This document shows, in pieces, positions 999-57,900 of a stretch of DNA of 64,000 nt (positions are counted from its first letter, which is position 1; every line of letters starts with the position of its first letter). Source of the DNA: Macrostomum hystrix (lineage: Eukaryota > Animalia > Platyhelminthes); contig CATNEN010000037.1 in NCBI GenBank assembly GCA_950097015.1, positions 2,666,001 through 2,730,000 of the forward strand. Direction: 5' to 3'. The position numbers and the translations under genes are program-made. The notes beneath the pieces were generated by a model, which saw only the letters and a program-made list of their open reading frames with translations, was not told the DNA's origin and ran no database searches.

Positions 999-3900
999 TC
1001 AACCGTTTCGGCTGCTGCCGGAGAAAAAGTTCATCTGAAAATAAATTATTTTGGATAGAGGACGACACGCATCATACTGCTTTGAGTAGTTTTATAAAAC
1101 ATGAAGTCTAACAATAGAGTGCCTTTAATTAGCACATACCGCTTGTATTTTGAATTTTTTGTCTCAAAAAATGAAATAACAACAACGCTTTTTCGGTGAT
1201 TGGTCCTAACAAACGTCCTTTATAAGATGGGATTATAGGATAAATATCTGAATCAATCACAGCTTACCACTGTGTCGCTGAGGGCGTTAAAACTGGACCG
1301 CCTTGTGGCGCTAGAGTCGCCGGCTCGGTCCTGCAGTACAATGGGATATGGATTGATACACGCTGATGCCTCGGAAACTAATTTTCTTTTTTTCAGATCC
1401 CACTGCTGCATACTCAGGTCCCACTTCAGCATACTCAGGTCCCACTTCAGCATCCCCAGATCCCACTCCTTCTTCCCCAGATCCCACTCCTTCTTCCCCA
1501 GATCCCACTCCTGCATGCCCAGATCCCACTCCTTCTTCCCCAGATCCCACTCCTGCATGCCCAGATCCCACTCCTTCTTCCCCAGATCCCACTCCTTCTT
1601 CCTCAGATCTCACTTTTGCATCCCCAGATCCCACTTTTGCATCCCCAGATCCACTTCAGCATCCTCAGGTCCCACTTCAGCAGCCCCAGATCCCCAGATG
1701 TTAAAAGTCGCTCTCACGGGCATGAGGTTGTAGGTTGATGGCCTTCGGCTAGACTGCTTTGAGCTTTGCGGTGAGTTAAACGAAGCCTCCCCTACCGGCT
1801 GCCAAGCTGCCGCCGCTGCTCCCGACGCCGAAGCTGCAGGCACCGCTCATTGATGAAGCTGACGTAGGGCCGGCGGGGCCGGCGGCAGTCGTCGGCGCGG
1901 TGTTGACGCTGTGTCGTCTTGGCTGAACAGCTGTCGGCAAGGACAAGTGTGAAGCTGCGGTTAGCATCCTCCTGCAATGTTTTGCGTGTGTTACAGGTTT
2001 TAATCCCAGTCCAGTCTGTCTGGCTCTGACTGCACTAAATATTTAAATCGGGTAGTGTGCGATGCACCTGCATGTGTGATAACCAACGACCATGAGCAGT
2101 TATTTACCTATAGAAATTAAGCATCATTAGTTAACAATGAAACATGCACAATAACCAGTTGCTTGGGTAAAGATCAGATATCGATTTACATTGGGAAAAA
2201 AATTTACCAGGGATCAGCAGTGTTAGTGACAAAGGAACAATAATGCCCGGGAGAAAGGCTGGGAAATAATCAAGCTGAGAAAATTGAATGAATTGACTAG
2301 ATCAGGGCTGCCAAGAAAGAAATAATGGAGAGCGGAGGCTGACGATTGCACTGAGATTTCAATTGTCTGACTGGCGTTTCGCTTCGCCATTCGTATTGAT
2401 GGCTGATGAATTCTGAGAGCTACTCAAAATAATTCAATAGAAATTAATGTCAGTCTGTAAAGTATAAAAAACAGAGATATTTTTTAGGGGGTGGGATGAA
2501 AAGTGAGAAGGGGTAGGAAATGAAGAGAGAGAGAAAATTGAGGCATGGGTACAGGGATACAGGGAGACACAGAGGAACATAGAGACAGAGACAGAGACAG
2601 AGACAGAGACAGAGACAGAGATAGAGACAGAGGCAGATACAGAATGAGACAGAGAGACAGAGATAGAGACAGAGATAGAGATAGAGACAGAGATAGAGAT
2701 AGAGACAGAGATAGAGATAGAGACAGAGACAGATACAGAATGAGACAGGGAGACAGAGATAGAGACAGGGATAGAGACAGAGACAGAGACAGTGGCAGAG
2801 ACAGAGACAGATAGAGAATGAGACAGAGAGACAGAGACAGAGACAGTGGCAGAGACAGAGACAGATAGAGAATGAGACAGAGAGACAGAGACAGAGACAG
2901 TGGCAGAGACAGAGACAGATAGAGAATGAGACAGAGAGACAGACAGAGACAGTGGCAGAGACAGAGACAGATAGAGAATGAGACAGAGAGACAGAGACAG
3001 AGACAGTGGCAGAGACAGAGACAGATAGAGAATGAGACAGAGAGACAGAGACAGAGACAGTGGCAGAGACAGAGACAGATAGAGAATGAGACAGAGAGAC
3101 AGATAAGAGACAGAGACAGGGACAGATAGAGAATGAGACAGAGAGACAGATAAGAGACAGAGACAGAGACAGATAGAGAATGAGACAGAGAGACAGATAA
3201 GAGACAGAGACAGAGACAGATAGAGAATGAGACAGAGAGACAGATAAGAGACAGAGACAGGGACAGAGACAGATAGAGAATGAGACAGAGAGACAGAGAC
3301 AGAGACAGTGGCAGAGACAGAGACAGATAGAGAATGAGACAGAGAGACAGACAGAGACAGTGGCAGAGACAGAGACAGATAGAGAATGAGACAGACAGAC
3401 AGAGACAGAGACAGTGGCAGAGACAGAGACAGATAGAGAATGAGACAGACAGACAGAGACAGAGACAGATAGAGACAGAGACAGTGGCAGAGACAGAGAC
3501 AGATAGAGACAGAGACAGTGGCAGAGACAGAGACAGGCAGAGACAGAGACAGATAGAGAATGAGACAGACAGACAGAGACAGAGACAGATAGAGAATGAG
3601 ACAGTGGCAGAGACAGAGACAGTGGCAGAGACAGAGACAGATAGAGAATGAGACAGACAGACAGAGACAGAGACAGATAGAGAATGAGACAGACAGACAG
3701 AGACAGAGGTGTATACGCAGGTAACAGAGGTGTACACGAAAATGGTGGTAGATGTTTAATAAGTTGAGAAGGGAACGGAAGAGATAAAAAAAGGAGAGGG
3801 AGTTGTATGATAATAAAGTGAGGATGAAAATGAAATGAAGCCTAAAGAGAGGAATGCAATCATAGGAAAGGCAAGGCAGCAGGGAAGGTTGCAATTCAAT

Positions 3901-6269
3901 TTTAGCCACCAGTTGTAGGATGGCAGCTCAGGAAATTACGACTTGGCGTGCTGATAAAAAGTGCAGCCGCTTCAACTTGCCGACCTTGATGGGATTTGGC
4001 TGATAGATTTTGCGCCAGGTAATAATAATATCAGGCAGGCAGCTTTAGTGGGAATAATTTTTACCTGAACGCGCAACTACTGTCTCTGTTAGTCACTTTT
4101 TCCTCTAAGATTTTTTAAAAAGTCCATTGTTTAGATGAATAGCGACTGTGCTAGTGTCGCTAAACTGAAACGATTCCCATGCACAAAGCAATTGCGAAGA
4201 ACAGTCATTTGCGATAGCTTAATGACAGTGGGATAAGGCAAGAGAGTGGGTATAGCACTCAAGGGTTTGTCAGCGAGTGACGGGAAACATAACAGGAGAT
4301 CACACTCCATTGAAAGTACGAAACAGCACTACCACAGACATCTAAACATGACTAAAATATAGACAATTCTTTAATTTACCATTCGATTTGTTTAAAGTTT
4401 TTCATTTCAGCATTTTCAAGTGAATTTCAGGAAAAATGTGTCGCTCAGATAAATTTATGACTAAGGCAGAGAGGAGAGAAACCGAGAGACAATGGCAGTA
4501 ACAACGAGAGATATAGAGATAGAGATAGAGACAGAGATAGACAGAGGTAGAGACAAAGACATATAGAGACAGAGACAGACATAGGTAGAGATAGAGATAG
4601 ACAGAGGCAGACAGAGATAGAGACAATGACAGATAGAGACAGAGACAGAGATAGAGGCAGAGACAGAGACATAGACAGAGACAGAGACTGAGATAGAGAT
4701 AGAGACTGAGATGGATAGAGATAGAGACAAAGACAGACAGACAGAGACAGAGACAGAGACAGAGACTGAGATAGAGATAGAGACTGAGATGGATAGAGAT
4801 AGAGACTGAGATGGATAGAGATAGAGACTGAGATGGATAGAGATAGAGACTGAGATAGATAGAGATAGAGACAAAGACAGACAGAGACAGAGACAGAGAC
4901 AGAGACAGAGACTGAGATAGAGATAGAGACTGAGATGGATAGAGATAGAGACTGAGATGGATAGAGATAGAGACTGAGATGGATAGAGATAGAGACTGAG
5001 ATGGATAGAGATAGAGACAAAGACAGACAGAGACAGAGACAGAGACAGAGACAGAGACTGAGATAGAGATAGAGACTGAGATGGATAGAGATAGAGACTG
5101 AGATGGATAGAAATAGAGACTGAGATGGATAGAGATAGAGACTGAGATGGATAGAGATAGAGACAAAGACAGACAGAGACAGAGACAGAGACAGAGACTG
5201 AGATAGAGATAGAGACTGAGATGGATAGAGATAGAGACTGAGATGGATAGAGATAGAGACTGAGATGGATAGAGATAGAGACTGAGATGGATAGAGATAG
5301 AGACTGAGATGGATAGAGATAGAGACAAAGACAGACAGAGACAGAGACAGAGACAGAGACATAGACAGAGACATAGACAGAGACAGAGACTGAGATAGAG
5401 ATAGAGACTGAGATGGATAGAGATAGAGACTGAGATGGATAGAGATAGAGACAAAGACAGACAGAGACAGAGACAGAGACAGAGACAGAGACATAGACAG
5501 AGACAGAGACTGAGATAGAGATAGAGACTGAGATGGATAGAGATAGAGACTGAGATGGATAGAGATAGAGACAAAGACAGACAGAGACAGAGACAGAGAC
5601 AGAGACAGAGACAGAGATATCAGGTAGCTACCCTATCTACCGGTCATCTACTCACTGTCAGGTGCACATTCTTTATATTCCTATCTGAGCAAGGGGATTA
5701 AGAAAATCATGCGGCTCTATGGTTAGGCTTGGAGCACAGGGGCAAGGGAAGGGGAGGAATTCAGATAGCGGAAGCAGATCAGTTTTCAATGCCTGGGAAA
5801 TCCGCATATTGTGGGGCGCGCCGCGCGCTTCGATAATCCAGGCATCGAGGGATCGCGCTGAGAATGACCCAAAGAACATGCAGAACGATAAGGCGGACTG
5901 CAGCACTGGATGGCACATTGCACTGATACCACATGGATGCGATATCTGTAGCGGCACGGTTATGGGATTATGGGAAGCGGGCGACAGACAGTGGGCACAA
6001 ACACGCAGCAATTAAATTCTTTTGCACACAAATTGCGGCCGATTAAAACAAGATAATAGATAAGACAAAGACTGATAGAGAGCGGCTGGCAGGGTGGGCG
6101 AGGGCGTACACTGCTGCTGTACAGATGACGCCGGCCCACCGAGGACATCGACTCCCCGATGGAAGGAGGGTGCGGCGTCACGTCCAGACTCCGACTTCGC
6201 GGCTGATGCTGCTCAAAGTGATGCGTGATCATTAGCCTTGGCGGCGGCTGAACGCTGGCCTGCCAGCGA

Positions 6270-6310
<41 letters not shown>

Positions 6311-9300
6311 ATGATGCTGGTGCAGATGTAGCAGTCTTTGTCGACCTCTGTAGTCCTCTTGAGTAGGCTCCACTGCCGCATCCGCAGCTGAAGCGCTGTT
6401 CTCATCCGTGTCAGCTGATGTAGTCACAATGACTGGCACTGATAGCGAGTGCTGCGGCGGCTGATGCACCCGCAGACAGTCCGGATGGGCGCCGAGGGAG
6501 CCGGTTTTGATGCGCGAACCGGCAGCGGCTCCCGTGTCTGAGCCGCCAGCCACGGAGGACGAGGCGCTCGACTGCCAGGTCGGGGATTGAGCGCACAGAT
6601 CGAGGGGGCGGCTGGCTTGTTAGACAGGATGCAAAGCCATTGTGGCATGCTACACTCGCGGATTCTTAACTTGCTTCAGCATTCTCAAAAATATTGGCTC
6701 CGGCTTTGTGCTAAATGCAAGGCTACACATGAGCAGTGCTTTGCATTGACGCGAATAACTAACAAATGCAGCTAAACTGAGAGGTTGTTTAAAAACATGC
6801 TTATTTACTGCTTATTTACTGACTAATTAGTTATGTTTAAAAAGCGAAACTAAAAATGAAGATGCAGGTAAAAAACAACACAGTTAAAAGTGCGTCAGTG
6901 GAGAAATAAAACTATAATCTCATTATCATATTTTTTAGCCTTCTCTTCTCCAAGCAAAATTCCTGCAGAAATAATAAATATGCGAACTTAAAAGGATTGA
7001 TACATGATAAGTTGTAGCTACTCATTAGAGCAGTTTGTCACTGATCTGCAAGGAATCGACTAGCTATGTCTTCAAGCGGTGAGTACTTTTGCTTCATTCA
7101 CAAATAACTGTGCGTGCGATTGGCCAACTAAAACACAGAACACTCACTGGCGGGCCGCTAACGCTGAAGACATCCGTTGCTGAGCCTTTCCGAGGACTGG
7201 CCCGCAGGCTAAATGACGGACTGCTGCCAGCTTTGCCCATCTTCACCACCGGGTCCTCGCCTACGGTGTGAAAGCGATCGGCTGAGGTTAATGACTGGGT
7301 TGCCATGGAAACTAATGGTGACGATATATTCAACTGAACATGCAAGTTTACTTGGAAAAAAAAGAAAGAAGAAATAAAAAAGCAGAGCGGCACTCGCAGT
7401 GCTTGAAGGATAAAGAGGAAAACAAAAAAGTGGACAGTCGTGGCCTTATGCCTTGGACAGAAGGAACGAAATGACAACCAATATCTATGATCATGGTCAC
7501 GGAAAAGCATCATTAATACGTACATAGCCGCAGCAGCAGCAGTTCAGTACATGGACAGCGGAACCCTCTAGTACTACAGCTGATGCTGGCACTGATTTAA
7601 TAGCTAGGTAAACTTAAGCAATGCAGAGTTAATTTCCTTGATAAAAGAACACAAATTGTTCCTGTGTAGTCGGGAATCGAACATTCGACCTTCAAGTCAT
7701 GAGTCCGACACTCTAACCACTAGGCTACAATTCCCCCACTTCATGTGTTTTCCTGACCAATTAGAATGCGGAGTGAGGTTGTTGACTCTTGTTTATATAG
7801 AGATCGCCCATAGATTGTCATCCAGCATTCCAAAAAGTTTAAGTTACTCTTATTGGAGAGTGTATGCTCTCGAGCTCAGCTCAATTTGGCCACATATAGC
7901 CGTTGCTATGTGCAATCTATTGAGAATTGGCTTCAAGGAATTGTAGGCAGATAAAAAATCCAATTCTGAGTGAACAGTTAGCTTGTTTAAAGCAATATGA
8001 AGAGACCATTTATCATTGAACAGAACAAGTGACTAATGTTCTTTTTGACATACTAAAATAGGCAGCAATGTTCTGTATACATAGTCTAAGAAACTCAATT
8101 GGGCAAAATGTTGGATTGTTGAACTAAATTGTTAGGGCCAATCCCCCTATTGATGTCGATTTCACAAGTTACCAACTTGATTGACAGTTACTGCCTAGGG
8201 CGTCAAGCAAATTTGGAATTAAGCAAGCCAATGCTAGATGGCCTTCTCTTCACTTCAACACCTCAGAGTAACAAGTTCATTCCTTTTCCATCACTCTGGC
8301 CTGCAAATGAACTCACTGACGCTAGTCAAATATGCACTTTTCTTTGGATTGAGGACAAACAAATGAACCATTAGTCCACTGAGCATCACATGTAGATGTA
8401 TTGAGATCGCAGTTCATACTGGTTTTACCTTGGACAAAGAGATTGTCTTTCAACCATCCATAATGCCAAAGCTCCATCCATAACGACAGAGAAACTAACT
8501 CCTTTATGAAACAAGGCTGGTACAGGTTTTCCACATTTTTTCCATCGAAAAAAAAGTTGAAAAGGCCTTCTCGTCATGTGTATAGTAGAGACCCTGCTGG
8601 AGAGCAACTTAATTGAGCAGTGCTCTGTTGCCACACGAACTATAACGCTGAGCTAAGCGAAAATAACTTGGCTTGGACACAAATCGATGATTGAACCCAA
8701 TAGTTGAAACCAATGGAAGCATTGCGGAGACCTTCACAGACCAAGCTAAGTATCAGATTGGCACACTTCATTTCCGAGAGGAAGTTCATGGAGTCCTGTG
8801 TTTCTTCTGCTGCAGCTTCTCGCGTCCTCTCGCTCTTGCTGCGCAGACTTACAAAGAGAGAAGGTTCTATAAAAATTCAAAGCCAAACGACACGACCCAT
8901 CGGTGTGTGCATGTGTTCGTCGGCTTTAGCGGTACCATCCGAAGTCGAGAAAGAGGCTCAGAGATCAGTATTAGATGGTAGTTTATCGAGGGACTTATTG
9001 AAATTACACAAAGGTCATTTTAACTTCCTGAGCAGATGGGGGAAGATTAGAGTAAATAGAAATTGCTCGTCTTCGCTTGACAAAGAGCATCGTCGGTACT
9101 ATAGAGAGGCCACATTGTCTAGGGATTAAATAAGACTGCAATCTGCCACGCCCTGTCGCTGTCTTGTGCTTAGCGGTGATTCTTCAGTTAAATGTGAAAC
9201 GCCACGAGGCAAGGAAAATGCCGGTTTCGTTTGTAAAACGAGTCAGATGGTCTTCTGTCTCGTTTATAATGGACCCTCAAATCTCTACTGTGTGAGCTGA

Positions 9301-12300
9301 TGCCGTGCGCGGTCATTTCTGATTGGCTGTGCCACGCATGAGGTCTTGGGGTTGACGCTTCTCAGAGGAGACTTTGAGCTCGAGATTACTCTCCGGCTGT
9401 ATAATATCTGCTGGACCTACAGCATCTGTAGAATTTTTGCTTTTCAACGAGCTGGACTCAGCAAAACCGAATTCGATCGGAATTTCAAGACGGAAGATTT
9501 CCGGAATTTACGACATACTTCGGATTCGGCAAATAACCGAAAATGCTGAGGACCGCTCTCTGTGCGGCTATCCTGATTGGGATCCTCTGCAAGGTTCATG
9601 CAGAAGAGTTGCGTCAGGAATACCAGCATTTGGTTGAGTCCGGCGAAGATCTGGAAGGGCTTAAGAGGTTCTCCTCGCCTGGAACCTACGACTGGAAGAA
9701 GAAGCGGTTCTCCTCTCCTGGAACCTACGACTGGAAGAAGAAGCGGTTCTCCTCTCCTGGAACCTACGACTGGAAGAAGAAGCGGTTCTCCTCTCCTGGA
9801 ACCTACGACTGGAAGAAGAAGCGGTTCTCCTCTCCTGGAACCTACGACTGGAAGAAGAAGCGGTTCTCCTCTCCTGGAACCTACGACTGGAAGAAGAAGC
9901 GGTTCTCCTCTCCTGGAACCTACGACTGGAAGAAGAAGCGGTTCTCATCTCCTGGAACCTACGACTGGAAGAAGAAGCGGTTCTCCTCTCCTGGGACATA
10001 CGACTGGAAGAAGAAGCGGTTCTCCTCTCCTGGGACATACGACTGGAAGAAGAAGCGGTTCTCCTCTCCTGGGACATACGACTGGAAGAAGAAGCGGTTC
10101 TCTACTGACGAAAACTGACGAAACTGGCGAATAAGAGCATTGTGATCGCAGAAGAAAGAGCTCGTTTAAATACGTTTTCCACGCCCAGGTGTATCAGCAA
10201 CAACAATTACACAAGATCTCATATGCACAACTAAACTAAAAGTAGGGCCACTGCAAAATTGCAGAACTGTCTCTGAAAAGTGTCTAGCTTTTTTTGCTTT
10301 TTGCGAAGCTCACCAATATTGAGCGATCTACGATAGTACGCCCGCACAAACGCATGAAATGAAATGGACCAACCTGAAACACACACATGCCGAGGGATAG
10401 CTTGGTTATTGCCAATAAATGTTTGCTCTGCTGAAATAAATCCCGACTCTGTGAGCACACCGCCCACACTGAGCTGTCATCACTCACTGCTCGTGAGCCG
10501 CACATTTGACGTGTTTGCCTTTTATACTCCGCAGCCATTCTCCAGTGGGAACAATGTGCCATGCCCATCCATTCTCTCTTTCGCCTTATTTTGTGATATC
10601 GGAAGAAATCTTGATTGGCAAAAGTTTAGTTGACCAAATAAATTATAACCAAGTGCGGCATGCAACAACTCCTGATGAGCCCGCTTTTATTTTAACTACC
10701 CAGCTAAACCGCAGAGAGTGTTCCAGGAACACAAGCTTGGCTAGTAACCTGTTTAGAAGCCCGAGGGAGCGAGAGACATTGATTGTTTCTGCCCCGAGTA
10801 TCCCCAATCAATGAAGAACAATAATTATTGATCAAGAAGACGCAAAAAGGAAGAAAACAGAAAAAACATGACAAGGAACGACGCATAAGTACACAAGGAC
10901 AGAAGCAGAATGTGTGCAAATATTAAACAAAATGTGCATTTAGGCATGCAGCGAATACTAGAAACGAAAAGGGAAACTTATAAAGAATAGCATTATTGCA
11001 AATCAACTTAAGGAAGTGTTGCATTGTTTCCATCAAGCAAGATGTTTCTGTTACCCAATCTATTTGATTCCGATAAATTATCAATCATCAATCAAAGCTC
11101 TTTAAGAGGCCTAGTTTCAGATGCATGCAGCTTTCGTGCAAGCCAAGACCAAATCAATGCGGCCTTACTGGCGTACCGAGGCAAATACTAAAGGCAGCTT
11201 TGACTTTTATTTCTTGTTGGCTTCAATGCCAAGTAGCTGGCGGTGTCAGGAACTAGTCTGCAACAAATTAAGATACTTTTTCTAGAACTAGCTATTTTCT
11301 ACCAGGACTGTGGCCCATTATGGCTTGACAATGGCTGGATAACTACTAAATATTTAGCTTTCCAGCCGGCGCACCTGAGTCACACAGACGGCTGGGACTC
11401 AGGGTGCCGTGGCTGGGCCTCCGTGTCACATTGTCATCCGATGTCTGCCTGGTGAGGGAGCTGCGCCTGTGCGAGTCGCGATAGCGTGATATCGCGTTGC
11501 TAATATCGCCGGCCCTGCTGGCCTCCAGAATTTTGGAGATGGCCTCGATGCGTTTGCTCAGCGGAATGTCTGACAGGTCTGCGAAGGTGGTGATTGCTCG
11601 CTTGATTGCCTCGTTGAATGGTCTCTCTTATAACGAACTTAACTCATGGCCCTTGCCATTTTCCATTGTATAAGATTTAACGGGCGGTACTAACAGCTGC
11701 GTAATTCCTTTTCCCGATATAACCTCACTCCGTCAGCCACCTCACTCCCTTTCCTGACCCCCACCTCACTCGTTTTACTGACAGTCACCTCATTCCCTTT
11801 CCTGACCACCACTTAACTCCCTTTCCTGACCGCCACCTCACTCGTTTTACTGACAGTCACCCCATTCCCTTTCCTGACCACCACTTCACTCCCTTTCCTG
11901 ATTGCCACCTCACTCCCTTTACTGACAGCCCACCTCGCTCCCTTTACTGACAACCCACCTCACTCCCTTTACTGATACCCACCTCGCCCCCTTTACTGAC
12001 AGCTACCTGACAGCCAGTTCACTCCCTAGATAGCTACCCAACTCCATTGACAACTATCTCTCCCATCGCTCCCATCCAGGTAGGTAGCAATGTACAATCC
12101 ACTGCCTTGGCAGCCAGCTCATCTTTTACTGTAACCGACATATATCCAATCTTCAGTGATATTTTTCAGATTTATTTTTTAATACGCATTCGAACAAATT
12201 CAAATTCAAATTCAATCAGACTCGCTTGTACAATCAGGGCTGTTATAACAATTGCGATTAGTAATTACGACTAGCATAACCATATTTCGACCGGTGCGCG

Positions 12301-24300: not shown

Positions 24301-27300
24301 CCAGCTGTCACAGCCACAGTGCAGATGCTGTCACAGCCACAGTGCAGATGGGAATCCCAGCTGTCACAGCCACAGTGCAGATGGGAATCCCAGCTGTCAC
24401 AGTGACAATGCAGATGGGGAATCCCAGCTGTCACAGTGACAGTGTAGATGGGGAACCCCAGCCGTCACAGTGACAGTGTAGATAGGAAATCCCTAGCTGT
24501 CACAGTGACAGTGTAGATGGGGAATCCCAGCCGTCACAGTGACAGTGTAGACGGGGAATCCCAGCCGTCACAGTGATAGTGTAGATAGGAAATCCCTAGC
24601 TATCACAGTGACAGTGTAGATGGGGAATCCCAGTCGTCACAGTGACAGTGTAGATGGGGAATCCCAGCCGTCACAGTGACAGTGTAGATGGGGAATCCCA
24701 GCCGTCACAGTGACAGTGTAGATGGGGAATCCCAGCCGTCACAGTGACAGTGTAGATGGGGAATCCCAGCCGTCACAGTGACAGTGTAGATGGGGAATCC
24801 CAGCCGTCATAGTGATAGTATTGATGACTCTGCATCATACTGGAAAGTCAGCTTGGTGCACTGTAAGGATGCTGACCGCTGACCCCGGGCCATCTGCCGC
24901 TCATGAACTGAGAATTTGCTTGAATTTTTATCTATAGGAAGGGTGTAGCTGTGAAATATTGCAGGTGCGAGCTTTGGACAGGTAGAGAGAGAGAGGGAGA
25001 GAGAGCGGAGCGCTCGCATTTGGAAAGGAAGGATGAAGCTTTTTGGAAAACAGAGATGACTAAGCAAAAAGCTTTAAACTAATTTTGAGGTCTCAGCGCC
25101 AAGGTGAGCTCGCCTTGCTTCAATAATTCTTAGAGTTCAGTCCTTTGCAGCCTTCTCATCTGAAGTGCATTCCGTATATGTAGCTATAAATTATTCTTTT
25201 GAAATCTTTGTTTAACGAGATAGTTTTGTCTTGTTCCCTGCTCAGTTAAGAAAAATCACTCCTGACCCTCTCGCTCACACCCTATCCCTCTCGCTCACTC
25301 CCTGTCCCTCTCGCTCACTCCCTGTCCCTCTCGCTCACTCCCTGTCCCTCTCGCTCACTCCCTGTCCCTCTCGCTCACTCCCTGTCCCTCTCGCTCACTC
25401 CCTGTCCCTCTCGCTCACTCCCTGTCCCTCTCGCTCACTCCCTGTCCCTCTCGCTCACACCCTATCCCTCTCGCTCACTCCCTGTCCCTCTCGCTCACTC
25501 CCTGTCCCTCTCGCTCACTCCCTGTCCCTCTCGCTCACTCCCTGTCCCTCTCGCTCACACCCTATCCCTCTCGCTCACTCCCTGTCCCTCTCGCTCACTC
25601 CCTGTCCCTCTCGCTCACTCCCTGTCCCTCTCGCTCACTCCCTGTCCCTCTCGCTCACTCCCTGTCCCTCTCGCTCACTCCCTGTCCCTCTCGCTCACTC
25701 CCTGTCCCTCTCGCTCACACCCTATCCCTCTCGCTCACTCCGTCCCTCTCACACACTCCCTGTCCCTCTCGCTCACTCCCTGTCCCTCTCGCTCACTCCC
25801 TGTCCCTCTCGCTCACTCCCTGTCCCTCTCGCTCACTCCCTGTCCCTCTCGCTCACTCCCTGTCCCTCTCGCTCACTCCCTGTCCCTCTCGCTCACTCCC
25901 TGTCCCTCTCGCTCACTCCCTGTCCCTCTCGCTCACTCCCTGTCCCTCTCGCTCACTCCCTGTCCCTCTCGCTCACTCCCTGTCCCTCTCGCTCACTCCC
26001 TGTCCCTCTCGCTCACTCCCTGTCCCTCTCGCTCACACCCTATCCCTCTCGCTCACTCCCTGTCCCTCTCGCTCACTCCCTGTCCCTCTCGCTCACTCCC
26101 TGTCCCTCTCGCTCACTCCCTGTCCCTCTCGCTCACACCCTATCCCTCTCGCTCACTCCCTGTCCCTCTCGCTCACTCCCTGTCCCTCTCGCTCACTCCC
26201 TGTCCCTCTCGCTCACTCCCTGTCCCTCTCGCTCACTCCCTGTCCCTCTCGCTCACTCCCTGTCCCTCTCGCTCACTCCCTGTCCCTCTCGCTCACTCCC
26301 TGTCCCTCTCGCTCACTCCCTGTCCCTCTCGCTCACTCCCTGTCCCTCTCGCTCACACCCTATCCCTCTCGCTCACTCCGTCCCTCTCACACACTCCCTG
26401 TCCCTCTCGCTCACTCCCTGTCCCTCTCGCTCACTCCCTGTCCCTCTCGCTCACTCCCTGTCCCTCTCGCTCACTCCCTGTCCCTCTCGCTCACTCCCTG
26501 TCCCTCTCGCTCACTCCCTGTCCCTCTCGCTCACTCCCTATCCCTCTCGCTCACTCCCTGTCCCTCTCACACACTCCCTGTCCCTCTCGCTCACTCCCTG
26601 TCCCTCTCGCTCACTCCCTGTCCCTCTCGCTCACTCCCTGTCCCTCTCGCTCACTCCCTGTCCCTCTCGCTCACTCCCTGTCCCTCTCGCTCACTCCCTG
26701 TCCCTCTCGCTCACTCCCTGTCCCTCTCGCTCACTCCCTGTCCCTCTCGCTCACTCCCTGTCCCTCTCGCTCACTCCCTGTCCCTCTCGCTCACTCCCTG
26801 TCCCTCTCGCTCACATCCCTAGTCCCTCTCGCTCACTCCCTGTCCCTCTCGCTCACTCCCTGTCCCTCTCGCTCACTCCCTGTCCCTCTCGCTCACTCCC
26901 TGTCCCTCTCGCTCACTCCCTGTCCCTCTCGCTCACTCCCTGTCCCTCTCGCTCACTCCCTGTCCCTCTCGCTCACTCCCTGTCCCTCTCGCTCACTCCC
27001 TGTCCCTCTCGCTCACTCCCTGTCCCTCTCGCTCACTCCCTGTCCCTCTCGCTCACTACCCTATCCCTCTCGCTCACTCCCTGTCCCTCTCGCTCACATC
27101 CCTATCCCTCTCGCTCACTCCCTGTCCCTCTCGCTCACTCCCTGTCCCTCTCGCTCACACCCTATCCCTCTCGCTCACTCCCTGTCCCTCTCGCTCACTC
27201 CCTGTCCCTCTCGCTCACTACCCTATCCCTCTCGCTCACTCCCTGTCCCTCTCGCTCACTCCCTGTCCCTCTCGCTCACTCCCTGTCCCTCTCGCTCACT

Positions 27301-30300
27301 ACCCTATCCCTCTCGCTCACTCCCTGTCCCTCTCGCTCACTCCCTGTCCCTCTCGCTCACTCCCTGTCCCTCTCGCTCACTCCCTGTCCCTCTCGCTCAC
27401 TCCCTATCCTCTCGCTCACTCCCTGTCCCTCTCAGCTCACTCCCCTGTCCCTCTCGCTCACTCCCTGTCCCTCTCGCTCACTCCCTGTCCCTCTCGCTCA
27501 CTCCCTGTCCCTCTCGCTCACTCCCTGTCCCTCTCGCTCACTCCCTGTCCCTCTCGCTCACTCCCTATCCTCTCTCGCTCACTCCCTGTCCCTCTCACAC
27601 ACTCCCTGTCCCTCTCGCTCACTCCCTGTCCCTCTCGCTCACTCCCTGTCCCTCTCGCTCACTCCCTGTCCCTCTCGCTCACTCCCTGTCCCTCTCGCTC
27701 ACTCCCTGTCCCTCTCGCTCACTCCCTGTCCCTCTCGCTCACTCCCTGTCCCTCTCGCTCACTCCCTGTCCCTCTCGCTCACTCCCTGTCCCTCTCGCTC
27801 ACTCCCTGTCCCTCTCGCTCACTCCCTGTCCCTCTCGCTCACTACCCTATCCCTCTCGCTCACTCCCTGTCCCTCTCGCTCACTCCCTGTCCCTCTCGCT
27901 CACTCCCTGTCCCTCTCGCTCACTCCCTGTCCCTCTCGCTCACTCCCTGTCCCTCTCGCTCACTCCCTGTCCCTCTCGCTCACTCCCTGTCCCTCTCGCT
28001 CACTCCCTGTCCCTCTCGCTCACTCCCTGTCCCTCTCGCTCACTCCCTGTCCCTCTCGCTCACATCCCTATCCCTCTCGCTCACTCCCTGTCCCTCTCGC
28101 TCACACCCTATCCCTCTCGCTCACTCCCTGTCCCTCTCGCTCACTCCCTGTCCCTCTCGCTCACACCCTATCCCTCTCGCTCACTCCCTGTCCCTCTCGC
28201 TCACTCCCTGTCCCTCTCGCTCACACCCTATCCCTCTCGCTCACTCCGTCCCTCTCACACACTCCCTGTCCCTCTCGCTCACTCCCTGTCCCTCTCGCTC
28301 ACTCCCTGTCCCTCTCGCTCACTCCCTGTCCCTCTCGCTCACTCCCTGTCCCTCTCGCTCACTCCCTGTCCCTCTCGCTCACTCCCTGTCCCTCTCGCTC
28401 ACTCCCTATCTCCTCTCGCTCACTCCCTGTCCCTCTCGCATCACTCCCCTGTCCCTCTCGCTCACTCCCTGTCCCTCTCGCTCACTCCCTGTCCCTCTCG
28501 CTCACTCCCTGTCCCTCTCGCTCACTCCCTGTCCCTCTCGCTCACTCCCTGTCCCTCTCGCTCACTCCCTATCTCTCTCGCTCACTCCCTGTCCCTCTCA
28601 CACACTCCCCGTCCCTCTCGCTCACTCCCTGTCCCTCTCGCTCACTCCCTGTCCCTCTCGCTCACTCCCTGTCCCTCTCGCTCACTCCCTGTCCCTCTCG
28701 CTCACTCCCTGTCCCTCTCGCTCACTCCCTGTCCCTCTCGCTCACTCCCTGTCCCTCTCGCTCACTCCCTGTCCCTCTCGCTCACTCCCTGTCCCTCTCG
28801 CTCACTCCCTGTCCCTCTCGCTCACTCCCTGTCCCTCTCGCTCACACCCTATCCCTCTCGCTCACTCCCTGTCCCTCTCGCTCACTCCCTGACCCTCTCG
28901 CTCACTCCCTGTCCCTCTCGCTCACTCCCTGTCCCTCTCGCTCACTCCCTGTCCCTCTCGCTCACTCCCTGTCCCTCTCGCTCACTCCCTGTCCCTCTCG
29001 CTCACTCCCTGTCCCTCTCGCTCACTCCCTGTCCCTCTCGCTCACTCCCTGTCCCTCTCGCTCACTCCCTGTCCCTCTCGCTCACTCCCTATCTCTCTCG
29101 CACACTCCCTGTCCCTCTCGCTCACTCCCTGTCCCTCTCGCTCACTCCCTGTCCCTCTCGCTCACTCCCTATCTCTCTCGCTCACTCCCTGTCCCTCTCA
29201 CACACTCCCTGTCCCTCTCGCTTACTCCCTGTCCCTCTCGCTCACTCCCTGTCCCTCTCGCTTACTCCCTGTCCCTCTCGCTCACTCCCTATCTCTCTCG
29301 CTCACTCCCTGTCCCTCTCACACACTCCCTGTCCCTCTCGCTCACTCCCTATCTCTCTCGCTCACTCCCTGTCCCTCTCACACACTCCCTGTCCCTCTCA
29401 CACACTCCCTGTCCCTCTCGCTCACTCCCTATCTCTCTCGCTCACTCCCTGTCCCTCTCACACACTCCCTGTCCCTCTCACACACTCCCTGTCCCTCTTG
29501 CTCACTCCCTGTCCCTCTCACACACTCCCTGTCCCTCTCACACACTCCCTGTCCCTCTCACACACTCCCTGTCCCTCTCACACACTCCCTGTCCCTCTCG
29601 CTCACTCCCTGTCCCTCTCGCTTACTCCCTGTCCCTCTCGCTTACTCCCTATCTCTCTCGCTCACTTCCTATCTCTCTCGCTCACTCCCTATCTCTCTCG
29701 CTCACTTCCTATCTCTCTCGCTCACTTCCTATCTCTCTCGCTCACTCCCTGTCCCTCTCGCTCACTCCCTGTCTCTGTCGCTCACCCGCTCTCCTCAATC
29801 GGGTGCCAGATCTGCAGCAGTTTTGGATGCCGAAATCGCTCCAGGTACCGGACCTCGCGCCGCAGAATCTCGGACACAGTCTCCTTGCGCTTTGGCTTGT
29901 GCAGCTTGTCCGCAGTCCGCTTGTCGAAAATGAACAGCGAGCAGTCCTTGTGAGGAATGAGATTTAATTTCAAATTCTGTTTTACCATTTTTAATATCAA
30001 AGCTGCTAATAGTACACGCAAGACAATGATAAGAGTGCTTCTGGGCTACATGCTTGTGAACTATGAATGCTAAAAATAAAATTTGAATAACAAGTCAAGC
30101 GTTGTAAAACGCACTGCAAGAACCCCAATTCGGATGCATCAATCTCAATTTTAAAAAACGTGAACCCAGTACAGCTCTGCACAATGGCCAAGTTTTTCAT
30201 GGAGCGTATTGTGGTCCTTTCAGTCCCAGGAACTGTGCTCCCAGAAATGCCCAGTTATTTTTTTGCGGGATCGCCTTACTAAGACTCACTTACAGAGCGG

Positions 30301-33534: not shown

Positions 33535-34685
33535 TACGAGGGGAAGTCAAAAGTAATGATAAATATTATCTTTCAAAGAGCAGAAACTAATGTAAAGGCT
33601 TATTTCTCCACGAAATCTCCGTCCAGCTCTAGGCACTTCTTCATACGATGCCGCCATCGCTCCAGCCCCGCCCTGAAGAAGTCAGGCGGCTGGGATGCGA
33701 GCCACTGCTGAGCTGCTGTTTTCGCCTCTTCCTTGCTCGAATGTCGCACTTCTTTGATAGCTTTCTTCAACTTTGGAAACAGGAAAAAGTCTGATGGCGC
33801 AAGATCAGGGCTGTAGGGAGGGTGGGAGAGAATTTCCCAGCGAAATTCGCGCAGGACGCCTCGACAGAGCCGTGAAGTGTGTGTCGGGGCATTGTCGTGG
33901 TGAAAGAGGATGCGCCGGTGGAGCTTGGCTTCCTGGCTAATTCTGCGCGCAGCTTTTGCAGCACACCTTCGTAGTAGGCGCCAGTGATCGTGCGCTGCTC
34001 CTCTAGGAAGTCCACTAGAATGACTCCCTCGGCATCCCAGAAAATGGTTGCCATGACCTTGGCCATGGAGCGGTCGGCCCGGAACTTCTATGGCCCGGCA
34101 GATCCTTGAGGCAGCCACTCTTTTGACTGGATTTTTTACTCTGGATTGTACTGGTCGATCCAGGTCTCATCACCAGTCACCAACCGTTCGAAAAAATCGT
34201 CGGCGTCAGTGTCCAGGCGGTTGAGAAGGTTTGCTGCGTACTCGCTGTGCTGGGCCTTGTGCTCCGGGCGCAACGCCCGTGGCACCCAACGGGCGCGCTG
34301 TGCTCGGTCGTCCACTGCGGTCAGCGTCTTCAATGGTCTCACGACCAGCCTTAAACTCGTGGATCCACCGATAAACGGTGGGATTCGGTGGAGCAGCATC
34401 CCCGAAGACCTTCTGTAAAGCCTCGAGGATGGCAGCCGGCTTCCAACCCAACCGCGTTAAAAATTTCACGTTGGATCACACTTCAATTTTGAAATTTTCC
34501 ATTGCTGAAAGGGGGTACTGTGTTTGTACTTCTGTCAAGGTTGATCTGTTCATCCAAACAGAACGAAAAATTATTAAAAATAAGAAACACAAGATACTTT
34601 TGCCAATGAAAAATGTTTGGGTTCAAAATTTATTTTCTGCTTTGTGCAGGAGAAAAATTATCATTACTTTTTTGACTTCCTCGTA
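33535..34685 (-). mobile_element. Decayed mariner (Tc1/mariner, DD34D) transposon, ~1.15 kb
   Basis: TA-flanked imperfect TIRs TACGAGGGGAAGTCAAAAGTAATGAT (33535) and reverse-complement TACGAGGAAGTCAAAAAAGTAATGAT (34685). Transposase from ATG 34502 to ~33600 has RWVPR, VTGDETW, HHDNAPTH and HPPYSPDLAPSDFFLFPKLK; it carries stops, frameshifts and an internal deletion after RSGRPST. Confidence 0.95.
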
Positions 34686-42200: not shown

Positions 42201-45200
42201 GTCTACACTCGAGTTCTATTGCGTATCAATGTAATGCTCACCAGAGCCTCCTTCACGTGACTGTAGCCGTTCAGCGTGTCCCAGACTTGAATTCGTTTGG
42301 CGGACACTGAAATCAGCGCGCCATCGCCCAGGGTGTGCAAGCACCTGATGGGCTCCTGTTAAAAAGACAGCATGTGATTTACTTGTACGAGCCGTAAGTT
42401 TAACAAATATTATAAAACAGTAGACAAATTCATGCGACCACAAGAGGTGCTCACCGAGTGCGCGTGATTCAGCCGTTCGACAGGTCTGTGGACGAAAGCG
42501 TCCTCGTGATCCCGACACCAGAGCTGGATCCGGCCCTGCTGAGTCTCCTGTGACCACGTTGCCCACCAGGTCAAATGTCAGCGCAGTGACCTCCGTCGTA
42601 GCTTGAGGCTGACTAGCCGCTCCAGACTCGCTCGAAAAGTTCAGGCCGCTCTTTTTATCACGAAGAGCCCGACTGCGGCCGGCGCTGTCATGGAAGATGC
42701 GCCAGAAGATGGGCCGGTCGGCGCCCACCGACACGATGACTGAGTCGTCTTCCGGATGAAAGACCGCCCTGCTGATACGGTCTCGCGCCGTTTGCGACTT
42801 GAGCACGAGCCGACGTGCGGCCCAATCGAATACTGTCAAGGTCTGACGATGCCCCGGTGGCTTCTGGGCGTCCACAGCCAGCAGGTAGGCGCCCAGGCTT
42901 TCATTAGAGAAGCTGAGAGACGCGATGCCGGTGTTCAGGTGCGGCTCAGACAGGACCACTCTAGTCTCTAGGCTGGACGCATCCCAGATGCGGATTTGAA
43001 CGGGTGCTCCCGGATCGAGAGGCCGCCTGGCCCGAAGCCACAGTAGGCGTTCACTGGGTGAGCGGCCGTGCTGTCATGGGGACGGAAGGTTTGCGAGAAA
43101 TCTCTCCTGATTTATCACAGTCTCTATCTAGTTAGGGAGACCCTAACTAGTCACGTTTCAAATTTATAGCTCAAATTCCAGCACTGATCGAATTTAGTAT
43201 CCCTACCAGGTAACTTGAGCAGTGTGCTCAGCATAGTGCCGCTGCCTATGCCGCTTGGAGTCTAGCAGGATCACCACATTGCCGGCCGCGTACAGCAGAT
43301 CGCCTGTCGGTAGGGCCAGCAGGCCAGCCGGGCTGTGGCAGCCGTACACCCAGTCCAGCCTCAGTGACAGGTCGGGCGGTTGCAGCTGCTGACGACTCGG
43401 CACCGACGCCGTAGGAGCTGGGAAGGCTGCGAAAATAAACAAATTTAATCATGAAAAAACATGGGAAGTTGGGAAGTTGTAAATGGACTTGTTCAGCTAC
43501 CCAGCAGCAACTCACTGTGCAGGTTGCCTCTAATTCTGACCGAGGCGGGCGGAGCCTTTTGCACGGACTCGCGGCCGGACAATTTGGGCAGCTGCTGGAA
43601 GCTGGAAGCGTCTTCGTCGTCAGTGGCACCGCTGGCAGCTGCGTCGCTGTCCTCGGCTGCCTCGTAGCGTCCAGCTGAGGATAATTTGGTAGTCGAGAGT
43701 AAGGCTGGCAGGCTCCTTAGAGTTAGACTCGGAAAAACAATTATCGCAGAATGCTTACCAGCTGCCTGACTCTTATCACCCAGCTGCTGCTGCTGTGCCT
43801 GCATTTGCCTCTGCTGCTCTAACTGTAGCTGAAGCAGCCGCCGTCTTTGCTGCTCATCCATTCGATTCTCTTCGCCAGTGCGCGGCCATTGAGGCGGAGG
43901 CGGTGGCGGCGGTGGTGGCGGCGGAGGCGGCGGTGGCGACGGCGGCGGCGGCGTCCGAGGCTGCGTCGTTCCGTTGACCTGCCCGGTAGGCTTTAGTGGC
44001 TCCAGCTTCGCCAGTCGACGCGCACTGGGGCTGCCGCCAACGCCTCCTCCGCTAACGTCGTCGCCCCAGAGGGCGGCCGCCTCAATGGGCCGGCTGCGCA
44101 GTTCCGCAGGTAGAAATTCCTGGCCGCAGGCGATGAAGCTGTCGTAGTCTTTGTACTCGTTGAACAGTTGCGATAGCTTTGTTACCTGCATTGAAAAAAT
44201 ATTTTTGATCAGGACAGCACTCATGAGCACATAACGCACTCTGCTTCTCGGATTCACAAACTGGGGACCTGAAAGTCACACGCATGACATCTTGCAAAGC
44301 AGCCTCCTGCAAATTGCTGAGCTATGGCCATTTGTTAATCTATCAAATCTGTTAGTTCCAACGCCCGGTCAACCGACCTTTCGATATGGTGGGTAGGCAG
44401 TGTACAGGCAGGTTGCGGGCGGGTGGCCCATCACTAGAAGACTGCCCAGATCCTCCAGGATGGCGTCCAGACCGTCTGCGCTGGCCGCCTTTACAGGACT
44501 TACTAGCAGCCGCTCTCTACTCTGTCGGTGCGTGTTACTGATGATGACAACGCTGCGCGGCTTGCCCGGACCGCCACGACCCGTTGTTGCATCGCCGGCA
44601 ACGATGGGCCGACCCACATACCCGTGTCTCTCCATGTGTCGCGGCTGGTCGTCGCTTTCTCCGACAACCTCGCCGCCGCCAACCAGCAGCCGCAGGTCGT
44701 CGCGCGTCCGCCGGCCAGCCTTGGCGCTCGGCGGCTTCATTCGCCATGCAGTTCGATGGCCGCCGTACTCCACAGAGCGGATCAGCTTGGAGCCGCTCGA
44801 TGCTACGTAGTGGCCTCCAGCCTCGAAGTCTGCCAACTGGCTCACCTTTTGAAATAGGGAAAAATACGAGTAATAAAAGAATAAGTTTAATGAGAAGTCG
44901 AGCTTAAAGAACCATTCAAAGTATTTTTATAGGATTGATAAGTTGTGAAAATTGATATCCTATGGACAAGCCAGTTGTGTCACAAATTTTTTTGATGGAG
45001 TGTCCGGGAAATTATGGTGCCATCAATATTGTTTCGAAGTCAGGTAATCCAGTCGTCGACAAGAAAATAAAAGCCTAAATTTTGACTCTGACGAACACAA
45101 TATTCACTGCAGTTCTTCCGGAACAGTTTCGTAGAAATAAATTCTACCTCAATGCCATCAGGCAGCCGAAAGACGTGCCTCACACCGGACGGTGTGCTAA

Positions 45201-50335: not shown

Positions 50336-51248
50336 TTAATCGTCTTCGTCGCTATCAATGCAAAATGTGGCTCTTCGAGGCGGCGGCAGCAGGGCGGCCC
50401 GATAGTTTCCTCCGTCGTTGTTGTCCCACAGACAGGGGGCCGTCTCATTGTCGCCCTGACAGCCGAGGCAAAATTCGAATTCAACCTGCTCTGTGATTGG
50501 GTCGAGGCCGCCAGCTGCCGACAGGGGCAGCTGGAAGGCGAACGAGTCTCCCTTGTCATTCTCGACTGGCGCCAGCGAAGGCGGCCTCGATATCTGCGAA
50601 GCTGCGCCAGGCGTTCAGCGTGACGCGAACGAAGACGCGCTTCTGGTAGCCCGTGTTGATCGTCACGGCTCGGCCGACAATGGAGCAGGAGCGAATGTCC
50701 AGTCGGAGCTCGAAGAGGCGCACACCGTCACCCTCAGACTTCAGCATCGACAGAACTGTCTCCAGGCCGGGCAGCTTGAATTGGCGCTCCAGTCTCGGAG
50801 CGTCCCTCGCATCGCTTTCGTCCAGCCTAGCCGGAGCCGACTTCCAGGCGTTGTCGATGTGCAATTCCTCGTGCTCGAAGCAGATTGGCGGATCCGGCTT
50901 GTACAGACGAATTTCGATGAGCGATCGTCCCAGATCATCGGCAAAGCGAACCCGCTGACGTCGTTCATTAGAGGCCGCGGCAGCTTTGTCTTTCCTGACC
51001 AGCTCGGCGGCAAGAGCCGGTGAATAGTTCGACGTTGTGTCGGAAGCTGTCCACTGGCATTCCTTCAGAGGTCGCTTCTCGCTGAAGTAGCGGGCAAGAA
51101 ACTCATCGGGCTGTTTGCGCAGCTCGTCCCCGATTGAAAACGCGTCTTCCGCCAGCTGCTGCAACTGCTGCTGCTGCTGCAGGCTGCATCGGCACTGGCA
51201 GCCGCCCCCGGCTGCCTGCTGCTGTGTGGCTACTTTGAACTGGCACAT
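50336..51248 (-). CDS. PPP1R3: Glycogen-targeting PP1 regulatory subunit (PPP1R3 family; RVxF + CBM21), single exon, one frameshift as assembled
   Basis: PP1 docking motif RQRVRFADDLGRSLIEIRLY; CBM21 GVRLFEL...GRAVTINTGYQKRVFVRVTLNAWRSFADIEA. After a +1 shift near 50570 the frame continues ENDKGDSFAFQLPL...VEFEFCL...LWDNNDGGNYR...EDD* (stop 50338-50336). The span of 913 nt is 3n+1. Confidence 0.88.
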
Positions 51249-54964: not shown

Positions 54965-57900
54965 TAACTGTTCTTGCACTTACTCCTGACTGTTCTTGAG
55001 ATTACTTCTGACTGTTCTTGAGATTACTCCTGACTGTTTTTGAGATTACTTCTGACTGTTCTTGAGATTACTCCTGACTGTTCTTGAGATTACTTCTGAC
55101 TGTTCTTGCACTTACTCCTGACTGTTCTTGAGATTACTCCTGACTGTTCTTGAGATTACTCCTGACTGTTCTTGAGATTACTCCTGACTGTTCTTGAGAT
55201 TACTCCTGACTGTTCTTGAGATTACTCCTGACTGTTCTTGCACTTACTGTTTTTGAGAATACTCCTGACTGTTTTTGAGAATACTCCTGACTGTTCTTGA
55301 GATTACTCCTGACTGTTCTTGAGATTACTTCTGACTGTTCTTGCACTTACTCCTGACTGTTCTTGAGATTACTCCTGACTGTTCTTGAGATTACTCCTGA
55401 CTGTTTTTGAGATTACTTCTGACTGTTCTTGAGATTACTCCTGACTGTTCTTGAGATTACTTCTGACTGTTCTTGCACTTACTCCTGACTGTTCTTGAGA
55501 TTACTCCTGACTGTTCTTGAGATTACTCCTGACTGTTCTTGAGATTACTCCTGACTGTTCTTGAGATTACTCCTGACTGTTCTTGAGATTACTCCTGACT
55601 GTTCTTGAGATTACTCCTGACTGTTCTTGAGATTACTCCTGACTGTTCTTGAGATTACTTCTGACTGTTCTTGCACTTACTCCTGACTGTTCTTGAGATT
55701 ACTCCTGACTGTTTTTGAGATTACTCCTGACTGTTCTTGAGATTACTCCTGACTGTTCTTGCACTTACTCCTGACTGTTCTTGCACTTACTCCTGACTGT
55801 TCTTGCACTTACTCCTGACTGTTCTTGAGATTACTCCTGACTGTTCTTGCACTTACTCCTGACTGTTCTTGCACTTACTCCTGACTGTTCTTGCACTTAC
55901 TCCTGACTGTTCTTGAGATTACTCCTGACTGTTCTTGAGATTACTTCTGACTGTTCTTGAGATTACTCCTGACTGTTCTTGAGATTACTCCTGACTGTTC
56001 TTGCACTTACTCCTGACTGTTCTTGCACTTACTCCTGACTGTTCTTGCACTTACTCCTGACTGTTCTTGAGATTACTCCTGACTGTTCTTGAGATTACTC
56101 CTGACTGTTTTTGAGATTACTCCTGACTGTTCTTGCACTTACTCCTGACTGTTCTTGAGATTACTTCTGACTGTTCTTGCACTTACTCCTGACTGTTCTT
56201 GCACTTACTCCTGACTGTTCTTGCACTTACTCCTGACTGTTCTTGCACTTACTCCTGACTGTTCTTGCACTTACTCCTGACTGTTCTTGCACTTACTCCT
56301 GACTGTTCTTGCACTTACTCCTGACTGTTCTTGCACTTACTCCTGACTGTTCTTGCACTTACTCCTGACTGTTCTTGCACTTACTCCTGACTGTTCTTGC
56401 ACTTACTCCTGACTGTTCTTGAGATTACTCCTGACTGTTTTTGAGATTACTCCTGACTGTTCTTGAGATTACTCCTGACTGTTCTTGCACTTACTCCTGA
56501 CTGTTCTTGCACTTACTCCTGACTGTTCTTGCACTTACTCCTGACTGTTCTTGAGATTACTCCTGACTGTTCTTGCACTTACTCCTGACTGTTCTTGCAC
56601 TTACTCCTGACTGTTCTTGCACTTACTCCTGACTGTTCTTGAGATTACTCCTGACTGTTCTTGAGATTACTTCTGACTGTTCTTGAGATTACTCCTGACT
56701 GTTCTTGAGATTACTCCTGACTGTTCTTGCACTTACTCCTGACTGTTCTTGCACTTACTCCTGACTGTTCTTGCACTTACTCCTGACTGTTCTTGAGATT
56801 ACTCCTGACTGTTCTTGAGATTACTCCTGACTGTTCTTGCACTTACTCCTGACTGTTCTTGCACTTACTCCTGACTGTTCTTGCACTTACTCCTGACTGT
56901 TCTTGAGATTACTCCTGACTGTTCTTGAGATTACTCCTGACTGTTTTTGAGATTACTCCTGACTGTTCTTGAGATTACTCCTGACTGTTCTTGAGATTAC
57001 TTCTGACTGTTCTTGAGATTACTTCTGACTGTTCTTGAGATTACTCCTGACTGTTTTTGAGAATACTCCTGACTGTTCTTGAGATTACTCCTGACTGTTT
57101 TTGAGATTACTCCTGACTGTACTTGCACTTACTCCTGACTGTTCTTGAGATTACTTCTGACTGTTCTTGAGATTACTCCTGACTGTTCTTGAGATTACTC
57201 CTGACTGTTCTTGAGATTACTTCTGACTGTTCTTGAGATTACTCCTGACTGTTTTTGAGATTACTCCTGACTGTTTTTGAGATTACGTCTGACTGTTCTT
57301 GAGATTACTCCTGACTGTTCTTGAGATTACTCCTGACTGTTCTTGAGATGACTCCTGACTGTTCTTGAGATTACTCCTGACTGTTCTTGAGATTACTCCT
57401 GACTGTTCTTGAGATTACTCCTGACTGTTCTTGAGATTACTCCTGACTGTTCTTGAGATTACTCCTGACTGTTCTTGAGATTACTCCTGACTGTTCTTGA
57501 GATTACTCCTGACTGTTCTTGAGATTACTCCTGACTGTTCTTGAGATTACTCCTGACTGTTTTTGAGATTACTCCTGACTGTTCTTGAGATTACTCCTGA
57601 CTGTTTTTGAGATTACTCCTGACTGTTCTTGAGATTACTCCTGACTGTTCTTGAGATTACTCCTGACTGTTCTTGAGATGACTCCTGACTGTTCTTGAGA
57701 TGACTCCTGACTGTTCTTGAGATTACTCCTGACTGTTCTTGAGATGACTCCTGACTGTTCTTGAGATTACTCCTGACTGTTCTTGAGATTACTCCTGACT
57801 GTTCTTGAGATTACTCCTGACTGTTCTTGAGATTACGTCTGACTGTTCTTGAGATTACTCCTGACTGTTCTTGAGATTACTTCTGACTGTTCTTGAGATT

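Follow-up and report, generated by a model that had tools for sequence, protein, structure and literature searches.

The open reading frame (ORF) at positions 9543 to 10118 of a 64,000-nucleotide stretch of Macrostomum hystrix DNA (assembly GCA_950097015.1, contig CATNEN010000037.1, forward-strand positions 2,666,001 to 2,730,000; this whole stretch is referred to as the window) raises the question of whether eleven identical copies of the nonapeptide FSSPGTYDW, each followed by a tetrabasic KKKR, are the product of a genuine gene or the translation of a simple repeat and, if they belong to a gene, to which kind of peptide they give rise. A preliminary description of the window had considered the ORF an unrecognised multi-copy neuropeptide precursor whose peptide might be distantly akin to pedal peptides and orcokinins. 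The analysis presented here reveals a transcribed, intron-less gene with relatives in Macrostomum lignano, two of which occupy the equivalent intron of host genes that are themselves paralogous. The gene probably encodes a secreted precursor of the prohormone type from which a lineage-restricted, non-amidated neuropeptide or peptide hormone is predicted to be released.

Organisation of the precursor

The coding sequence (9543-10118, plus strand, stop codon included), as delineated by ORF reading and translation, comprises 191 amino acids and starts with an ATG which is preceded, three codons upstream, by an in-frame stop. Its first 20 residues (M1-A20; 9543-9602, plus strand) constitute a predicted signal peptide consisting of an initial MLR, whose R3 provides a positively charged n-region, a hydrophobic core of 13 residues and a terminal KVHA. 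Hydropathy reaches a peak of 2.6 to 3.0 over residues 4 to 10, and the heuristically predicted cleavage after A20 places valine at position -3 and alanine at position -1, the segment ending in VHA. There follows an acidic spacer of 20 residues (E21-L40) which, together with the first dibasic site K41-R42, is encoded at 9603-9668 (plus strand, from the translation). This KR directly abuts the first of eleven 39-bp units (9669-10097, plus strand) identified by repeat and pattern analysis, each of which encodes FSSPGTYDW and is closed by KKKR. The translated frame then ends with the C-terminal tail FSTDEN and the stop codon (10098-10118, plus strand). Tandem Repeats Finder assigns the array a period of 39 bp with 11.3 copies and 98% matches, and a degenerate back-translated pattern of the nonapeptide finds exactly eleven matches in the window, all of them within the array, against an expectation of zero. 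In none of the eleven units does a glycine precede the basic residues. The nonapeptide carries a net charge of -1 and, as a free acid, has a calculated [M+H]+ of 1059.44; the corresponding value for the 20-residue spacer is 2373.12. From the signal peptide and the acidic spacer to the tail, the preliminary description turned out to be exact in every detail, and the prohormone architecture which it had recognised, with signal peptide, spacer and identical peptides lying between basic cleavage sites, is indeed present.

Relatives in Macrostomum lignano

When 1.84 billion representative proteins, a collection from which the exact protein of the window is absent, were searched exhaustively with phmmer, most of the matches proved to be low-complexity noise. 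The true relatives, with E-values from 1e-15 to 1e-21, all originate from M. lignano and are all annotated as uncharacterised or “hypothetical”. PAA48327.1 (BOX15_Mlig001773g8; locus L001) corresponds to a genomic ORF of 133 amino acids containing eight copies of FSAPGTYDW with KKR or RKR linkers, and PAA83548.1 (Mlig017890g3; locus L002) to a genomic ORF of 140 amino acids containing one FAQAGTYDW and seven FVQPGTYDW with KKR linkers. PAA73271.1 (Mlig017890g1) and PAA59548.1 (Mlig030851g1) harbour the same type of peptide as PAA83548.1, while the UniProt entry A0A1I8HD77 represents the type FSAP[Q/H]AFDW. The [M+H]+ values calculated for these peptides are 1043.45 (FSAPGTYDW), 1112.50 (FVQPGTYDW) and 1068.48 (FSAPQAFDW).

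All of these relatives feature a hydrophobic N-terminal segment, a KR, tandem nonapeptides of the form F-x-x-[PA]-x-x-[YF]-D-W and basic linkers. Compared to the window, their peptides differ at positions 2 to 7, their linkers are tribasic, and the two genomic ORFs contain eight copies instead of eleven. In the alignment, the KR before unit 1, Phe1, Asp8, Trp9 and the basic linker are invariant and position 7 is always aromatic, which results in the family consensus F-[SAV]-[SAQ]-[PA]-[GQH]-[TA]-[YF]-D-W with tri- or tetrabasic linkers. The signal and spacer regions, in contrast, cannot be aligned among the relatives although the peptide is kept. At the DNA level the paralogues are 75-83% identical and retain the peptide, the frame, a signal peptide and the KR site. 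The repeat period amounts to 36 bp in the M. lignano relatives versus 39 bp in the window, which corresponds to one additional Lys codon in the linker. A linker that varies in length (KKKR versus KKR or RKR) and yet stays basic is better explained as a cleavage site than as a structural element. The glycine which would serve as amide donor before the basic site is missing from all four paralogue types. Hence, the free-acid C-terminus, which had been proposed for the window's peptide in place of a Trp-amide, holds throughout the family and is a conserved property rather than an accident of one copy.

The family profile and a query of 94 amino acids likewise retrieved M. lignano proteins only. 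A word-indexed search for homologues, queried with all 191 amino acids, gave no match within its length window of 105-334 amino acids, which left out collapsed models of 85, 92 and 92 amino acids; two relatives of 108 and 145 amino acids fell inside this range, yet the search missed them. No relative beyond Macrostomum was found in the phmmer and profile searches, which is weak evidence of absence since the repeat disrupts short-read assemblies.

Several of the deposited M. lignano models deserve comment. The models PAA48327.1 (85 amino acids) and PAA83548.1 (92 amino acids) drop four of the eight 36-bp units as a false “intron”, while the underlying ORFs are uninterrupted (3001-3402 of locus L001 in NIVC01004175.1 and 3001-3423 of locus L002 in NIVC01000415.1). 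It seems that the repeat was collapsed in the course of transcript-guided annotation. The FSAPQAFDW type is known only from the fragment A0A1I8HD77 (P0007), which bears the spurious automatic name “Coat protein”, and from the C-terminal tail of a chimeric model of 1378 amino acids (P0047); neither of the two could be traced to a contig. The representative search also brought up a small secreted-looking protein of 134 amino acids (P0051) in which the unit PGSGTQDW recurs, always with a KR behind it. This “peptide-W-KR” design is presumably that of a Kex2-type processed repeat protein of another organism; we regard it as convergent, not homologous.

Transcription of the peptide gene

Contigs from X3 and X4, two runs of the source organism, cover the gene from 9330 or 9395 to 9707 at a depth of 44-92x and from 10046 to 10478 or 10653 at 63-69x, compared to 0-5x in its flanks. 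Among the DNA runs of this organism is the sample from which the window probably derives. They delimit an approximate transcribed unit consisting of a single exon (9330-10653, plus strand), the 5' limit of which lies between 9330 and 9395 and whose 3' ends are located near 10478 and 10653. The end of the X3 contig at 10478 is preceded by a pair of AATAAA poly(A) signals, with starts at 10414 and 10435 (10414-10440, plus strand), and that of the X4 contig at 10653 by a distal AATAAA (10637-10642, plus strand); the contigs thus terminate 43 nucleotides past the start of the signal at 10435 and 16 nucleotides past that of the signal at 10637. No splice joint is reported in the contigs across the gene, and in short-read assemblies the array itself yields only contigs of 34-93 nucleotides. 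We infer that both runs derive from RNA because of the depth profile and because one contig fits only positions 11375-11581 and carries unmatched letters on either side, the pattern expected of a spliced exon. The peptide gene is transcribed and intron-less. A transcript, the absence of which the preliminary description had named as a reason to abandon its reading, is therefore present.

Some further observations concern the upstream region. Provided that transcription begins at 9330 or further upstream, the 5' leader contains an upstream ORF of five codons (9338-9355, ATG at 9338). A TATAATAT motif at about 9401-9408 is situated within the contigs and not 5' of them. Contigs of low depth (3-5x) from X3 and X4 are found at 8300-8534 and 8808-9194, in the host intron described below and upstream of the peptide gene. 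They could stem from pre-mRNA of the intron, from a further exon or from a copy of a repeat; one of them shows 10 differences in 281 nucleotides.

Position within an intron of a host gene

The peptide gene is flanked by two coding exons of a host gene located on the opposite strand. The exon on one side of the intron (7154-7270, minus strand) is defined by tblastx matches to positions 833-940 of locus L001 and 2100-2216 of locus L002. The exon on the other side (11375-11581, minus strand) is defined by the fit of the exon-like contig mentioned above, by an open minus-strand frame and by a match to 5262-5482 of locus L002. A Pfam search of this second exon (11361-11600) found nothing. According to the translated matches, the host exons around the L002 paralogue occur in the same order, in the same orientation and at approximately the same distance as in the window. 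For the L001 paralogue a match is obtained to the upstream host exon (7154-7270) only. The peptide genes of L001 (Mlig001773g8) and L002 (Mlig017890g3) accordingly reside in paralogous host genes and, within these, in the same intron. Since host exons match around L002 on both sides and around L001 on one, the antisense nesting arose before the family was duplicated.

Variation among repeat units and between species

Among the eleven units of the window four nucleotide columns are variable, all of which are third codon positions and synonymous; the share of synonymous changes among all possible single changes to a unit amounts to 21%. Reads of run X1, which is labelled as organism A and which also contains a contig identical to the window, reveal a sister unit FSAPGTYDW followed by Arg. 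This unit differs from the FSAP unit of M. lignano by four synonymous and no non-synonymous substitutions in 27 nucleotides. Between the FSSP unit of the window and the FSAP units the proportion of synonymous differences (pS) is 0.33-0.67 and that of non-synonymous differences (pN) 0.05. Judged from these few sites, purifying selection appears to act on the sequence of the nonapeptide between paralogues and between species.

One of the paralogues carries Phe in place of Tyr7, which indicates that an aromatic residue is needed at this position and not a sulfated tyrosine; obligatory tyrosine sulfation is therefore judged unlikely.

Comparison with known peptide families

The gene has in common with prohormones a signal peptide, as assigned by heuristics, peptide copies placed between polybasic sites, a peptide which is kept among its relatives while signal and spacer diverge, and transcription. 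A comparison of language-model features places multi-copy neuropeptide precursors (PTSP/MIP, tachykinin, allatostatin, FLP, TRH) nearest to the window's precursor, albeit with a resemblance of 0.89 and 157 shared features, which is below the reliability level of the tool and hence serves as a lead only.

Among flatworm precursors, planarian Smed-npp-5 (PMC2953531) bears resemblance in that it is a multi-copy precursor of Trp-ending peptides of eight to nine residues released at KKR and KR sites. Its peptides, however, are amidated from a Gly donor and follow a W-x4-W pattern (SAWRDMPW-amide), whereas those of the window's family start with Phe, end with a conserved aromatic-Asp-Trp and have no Gly. 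Membership in the MIP/Wamide group (allatostatin-B, PTSP, npp-5) can be dismissed on the grounds that no unit of the four paralogue types contains a Gly donor. Nor does the family display the two tryptophans spaced by four to six residues which are typical of this group, as it possesses a single Trp and, seven residues before it, the invariant Phe of position 1.

Planarian pedal peptide/orcokinin precursors (Smed-ppp-1 and -2) resemble the window's precursor in being multi-copy and non-amidated and in using basic sites including KRR and KKR. Their peptides (xYYDPIGGGLL, SYFDKIGSDLL), however, comprise 11 to 12 residues with a Y/F-D-x-I-G core and a Leu-Leu end. The window's family, with nine residues, variable positions 2 to 6, Asp at position 8 and no such core, does not belong to them. 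The kinship proposed in the preliminary description had been founded on F-S-S-P-G, which after its initial Phe proves to be the variable part of the peptide ([SAV][SAQ][PA][GQH]), while Phe1, the aromatic residue at position 7, Asp8 and Trp9 are conserved. Of the two options which it had left, a very divergent member of that group or a new family, the former has to be given up and the latter is the better one. In Aplysia, the feeding-circuit-activating peptides (FCAP) are multi-copy, non-amidated neuropeptides with a free Trp end, as predicted for the window's peptide. FCAP peptides, however, have about 13 residues and an LDSLGG-type core related to pedal peptides and show no resemblance to F-x5-[YF]-D-W.

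Pfam, queried up to an E-value of 10, returned sub-threshold, repeat-driven chance matches only. Among the 51 prohormones of the planarian catalogue (Collins 2010, Tables S2-S5) there is no [DE]-W end before basic residues except that of the amidated NPP-5, and a schistosome neuropeptide paper contains no match to the FSSPGTYDW family. A literature search for FSSPGTYDW, its substrings, FSAPGTYDW and the M. lignano gene and UniProt identifiers, which did not cover Koziol et al. 2016, found no paper; the short strings TYDW and FSSPG gave noise only. The peptide, which had not been recognised in the preliminary description either, is thus without a named relative. The family is unnamed in databases and is a new, small one within a very well-known kind of gene.

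Proposed processing and competing explanations

If the precursor is handled as prohormones are, its signal peptide would direct it into the secretory pathway and would be removed by signal peptidase after A20. A subtilisin-like convertase of the PC2, PC1 or furin type would then cut after K41-R42 and after each KKKR, and an enzyme of the carboxypeptidase E/D type would trim the basic residues. Eleven free-acid FSSPGTYDW peptides, one acidic 20-mer and a short tail would result. For planarian NPP-5, mass spectrometry has shown that KKR sites of a flatworm prohormone are cleaved (Collins et al. 2010, PMC2953531, Table S2). Once released, FSSPGTYDW would most likely act on a receptor as a neuropeptide or peptide hormone. 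The more specific proposition, according to which the F-x5-[YF]-D-W free-acid nonapeptides form a new macrostomid-restricted neuropeptide family with an orphan receptor and with paralogues nested antisense in one intron of a duplicated host gene, is in our view evenly poised between right and wrong.

That the array is a non-functional minisatellite which happens to be open in one frame is very improbable. The 64-kb window does contain about 30 tandem arrays, several of them with periods divisible by three, and two further reading frames of the FSSPGTYDW array are open as well; as the window is full of minisatellites, repetition alone means little. What sets this array apart from chance is the combination of an ATG, a signal peptide, a KR exactly before unit 1, a stop codon after the array, transcription, exclusively synonymous variation and conserved paralogues. 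A minisatellite would account neither for discrete transcription with ends matched to poly(A) signals, nor for the exclusively synonymous differences among its units, nor for paralogues which keep peptide, frame, signal peptide and KR at the DNA divergence given above, nor for a conserved genomic position. It is because of transcription, synonymous-only variation, conserved paralogues and conserved position that we consider the ORF a real gene. The product of this gene might, though improbably, remain uncut and function as a secreted, lysine-rich repetitive protein made up of 13-residue repeats, with a structural, adhesive or matrix role. A signal peptide followed by a highly basic tandem repeat would suit a secreted structural protein too, and cleavage is deduced from prohormone biochemistry. 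Yet the KR exactly before unit 1 provides this unit with the same N-terminus as all others, each linker ends in a canonical convertase site, and the linker shifts from KKKR to KKR or RKR while the nonapeptide is kept. Moreover, the protein comprises only 191 amino acids, and the known adhesive proteins of Macrostomum are very large.

Provided that the precursor is cut as proposed, the peptide could stem from a non-neuronal secretory source and have its target in a partner or outside the animal, which we deem rather unlikely; it might then be a pheromone, a peptide of the seminal fluid or of a gland, or one used in defence. The design is the same as in yeast alpha-factor and in fungal Kex2-processed repeat proteins. 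The architecture alone fits a gland peptide equally well. A family of one genus with several paralogues and changing copy numbers (8, 8 and 11) is common for reproductive or ecological peptides, and in the whole-animal libraries the peptide gene is expressed rather strongly compared with its host gene. On the other hand, nothing links the peptide to a gland, and selection on it seems to be purifying instead of diversifying, as would more typically be seen in ligands whose receptor is fixed. Being short and negatively charged, the peptide is also unlike cationic antimicrobial peptides, and for the same reasons an antimicrobial role is judged unlikely. The division of probability between neuropeptide and gland peptide follows solely from priors and from the purifying mode of selection. 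We favour the secreted precursor of a neuropeptide or peptide hormone, against which the following points have to be set. The architecture by itself does not separate a neuronal from a glandular origin, the mature peptide is a prediction from sequence, and the signal peptide was called by eye and by hydropathy, with no trained predictor. The selection statistics are based on very few sites, if all in one direction. The plus-strand orientation of the transcript is taken from the ORF and the poly(A) signals since the contigs are without direction, and the library type of runs X3 and X4, assigned to RNA from their depth profile and the contig resembling a spliced host exon, is unrecorded. Finally, the family, as far as the sequence searches reach, is confined to one genus, so that deep conservation cannot be invoked in its support.

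Implications

The gene leaves the accepted view of prohormone function unaltered, and it is not mechanistically surprising. Its value lies in the organism and in the annotation. M. lignano is a flatworm model with working transgenesis for which we found no published neuropeptide catalogue, and the public gene models of the family are truncated, chimeric or misnamed, which a correct description mends. The corrected family supplies peptidomics with the exact sequences and masses of its peptides, and it yields probes to map a peptidergic cell type as well as ligands for the deorphanisation of G protein-coupled receptors in a phylum with major parasites. It also offers a clean example of how the collapse of tandem repeats in transcript-based annotation conceals multi-copy prohormones. 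Should the nonapeptides indeed form a new macrostomid neuropeptide family, they would provide a new ligand-receptor system in a model flatworm which is tractable by transgenesis and RNA interference.

Other features of the window

Pfam searches of minus-strand ORFs elsewhere in the window identified an EML-type beta-propeller (42216-42956, E-value 2e-22), a CBM_21 starch-binding module (50556-51245, E-value 2e-7) and a remnant of a DDE_3 transposase (33600-34115, E-value 2e-5). Very large, strand-skewed satellites of short period occupy positions 25256-29785, 54967-62146, 2581-3708 and 4509-5619; they comprise a 20-bp unit present 226 times, a 22-bp unit present 329 times and AGAGAC/AGAGAT arrays. 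These satellites account for long mechanical ORFs such as that at 25231-29967.

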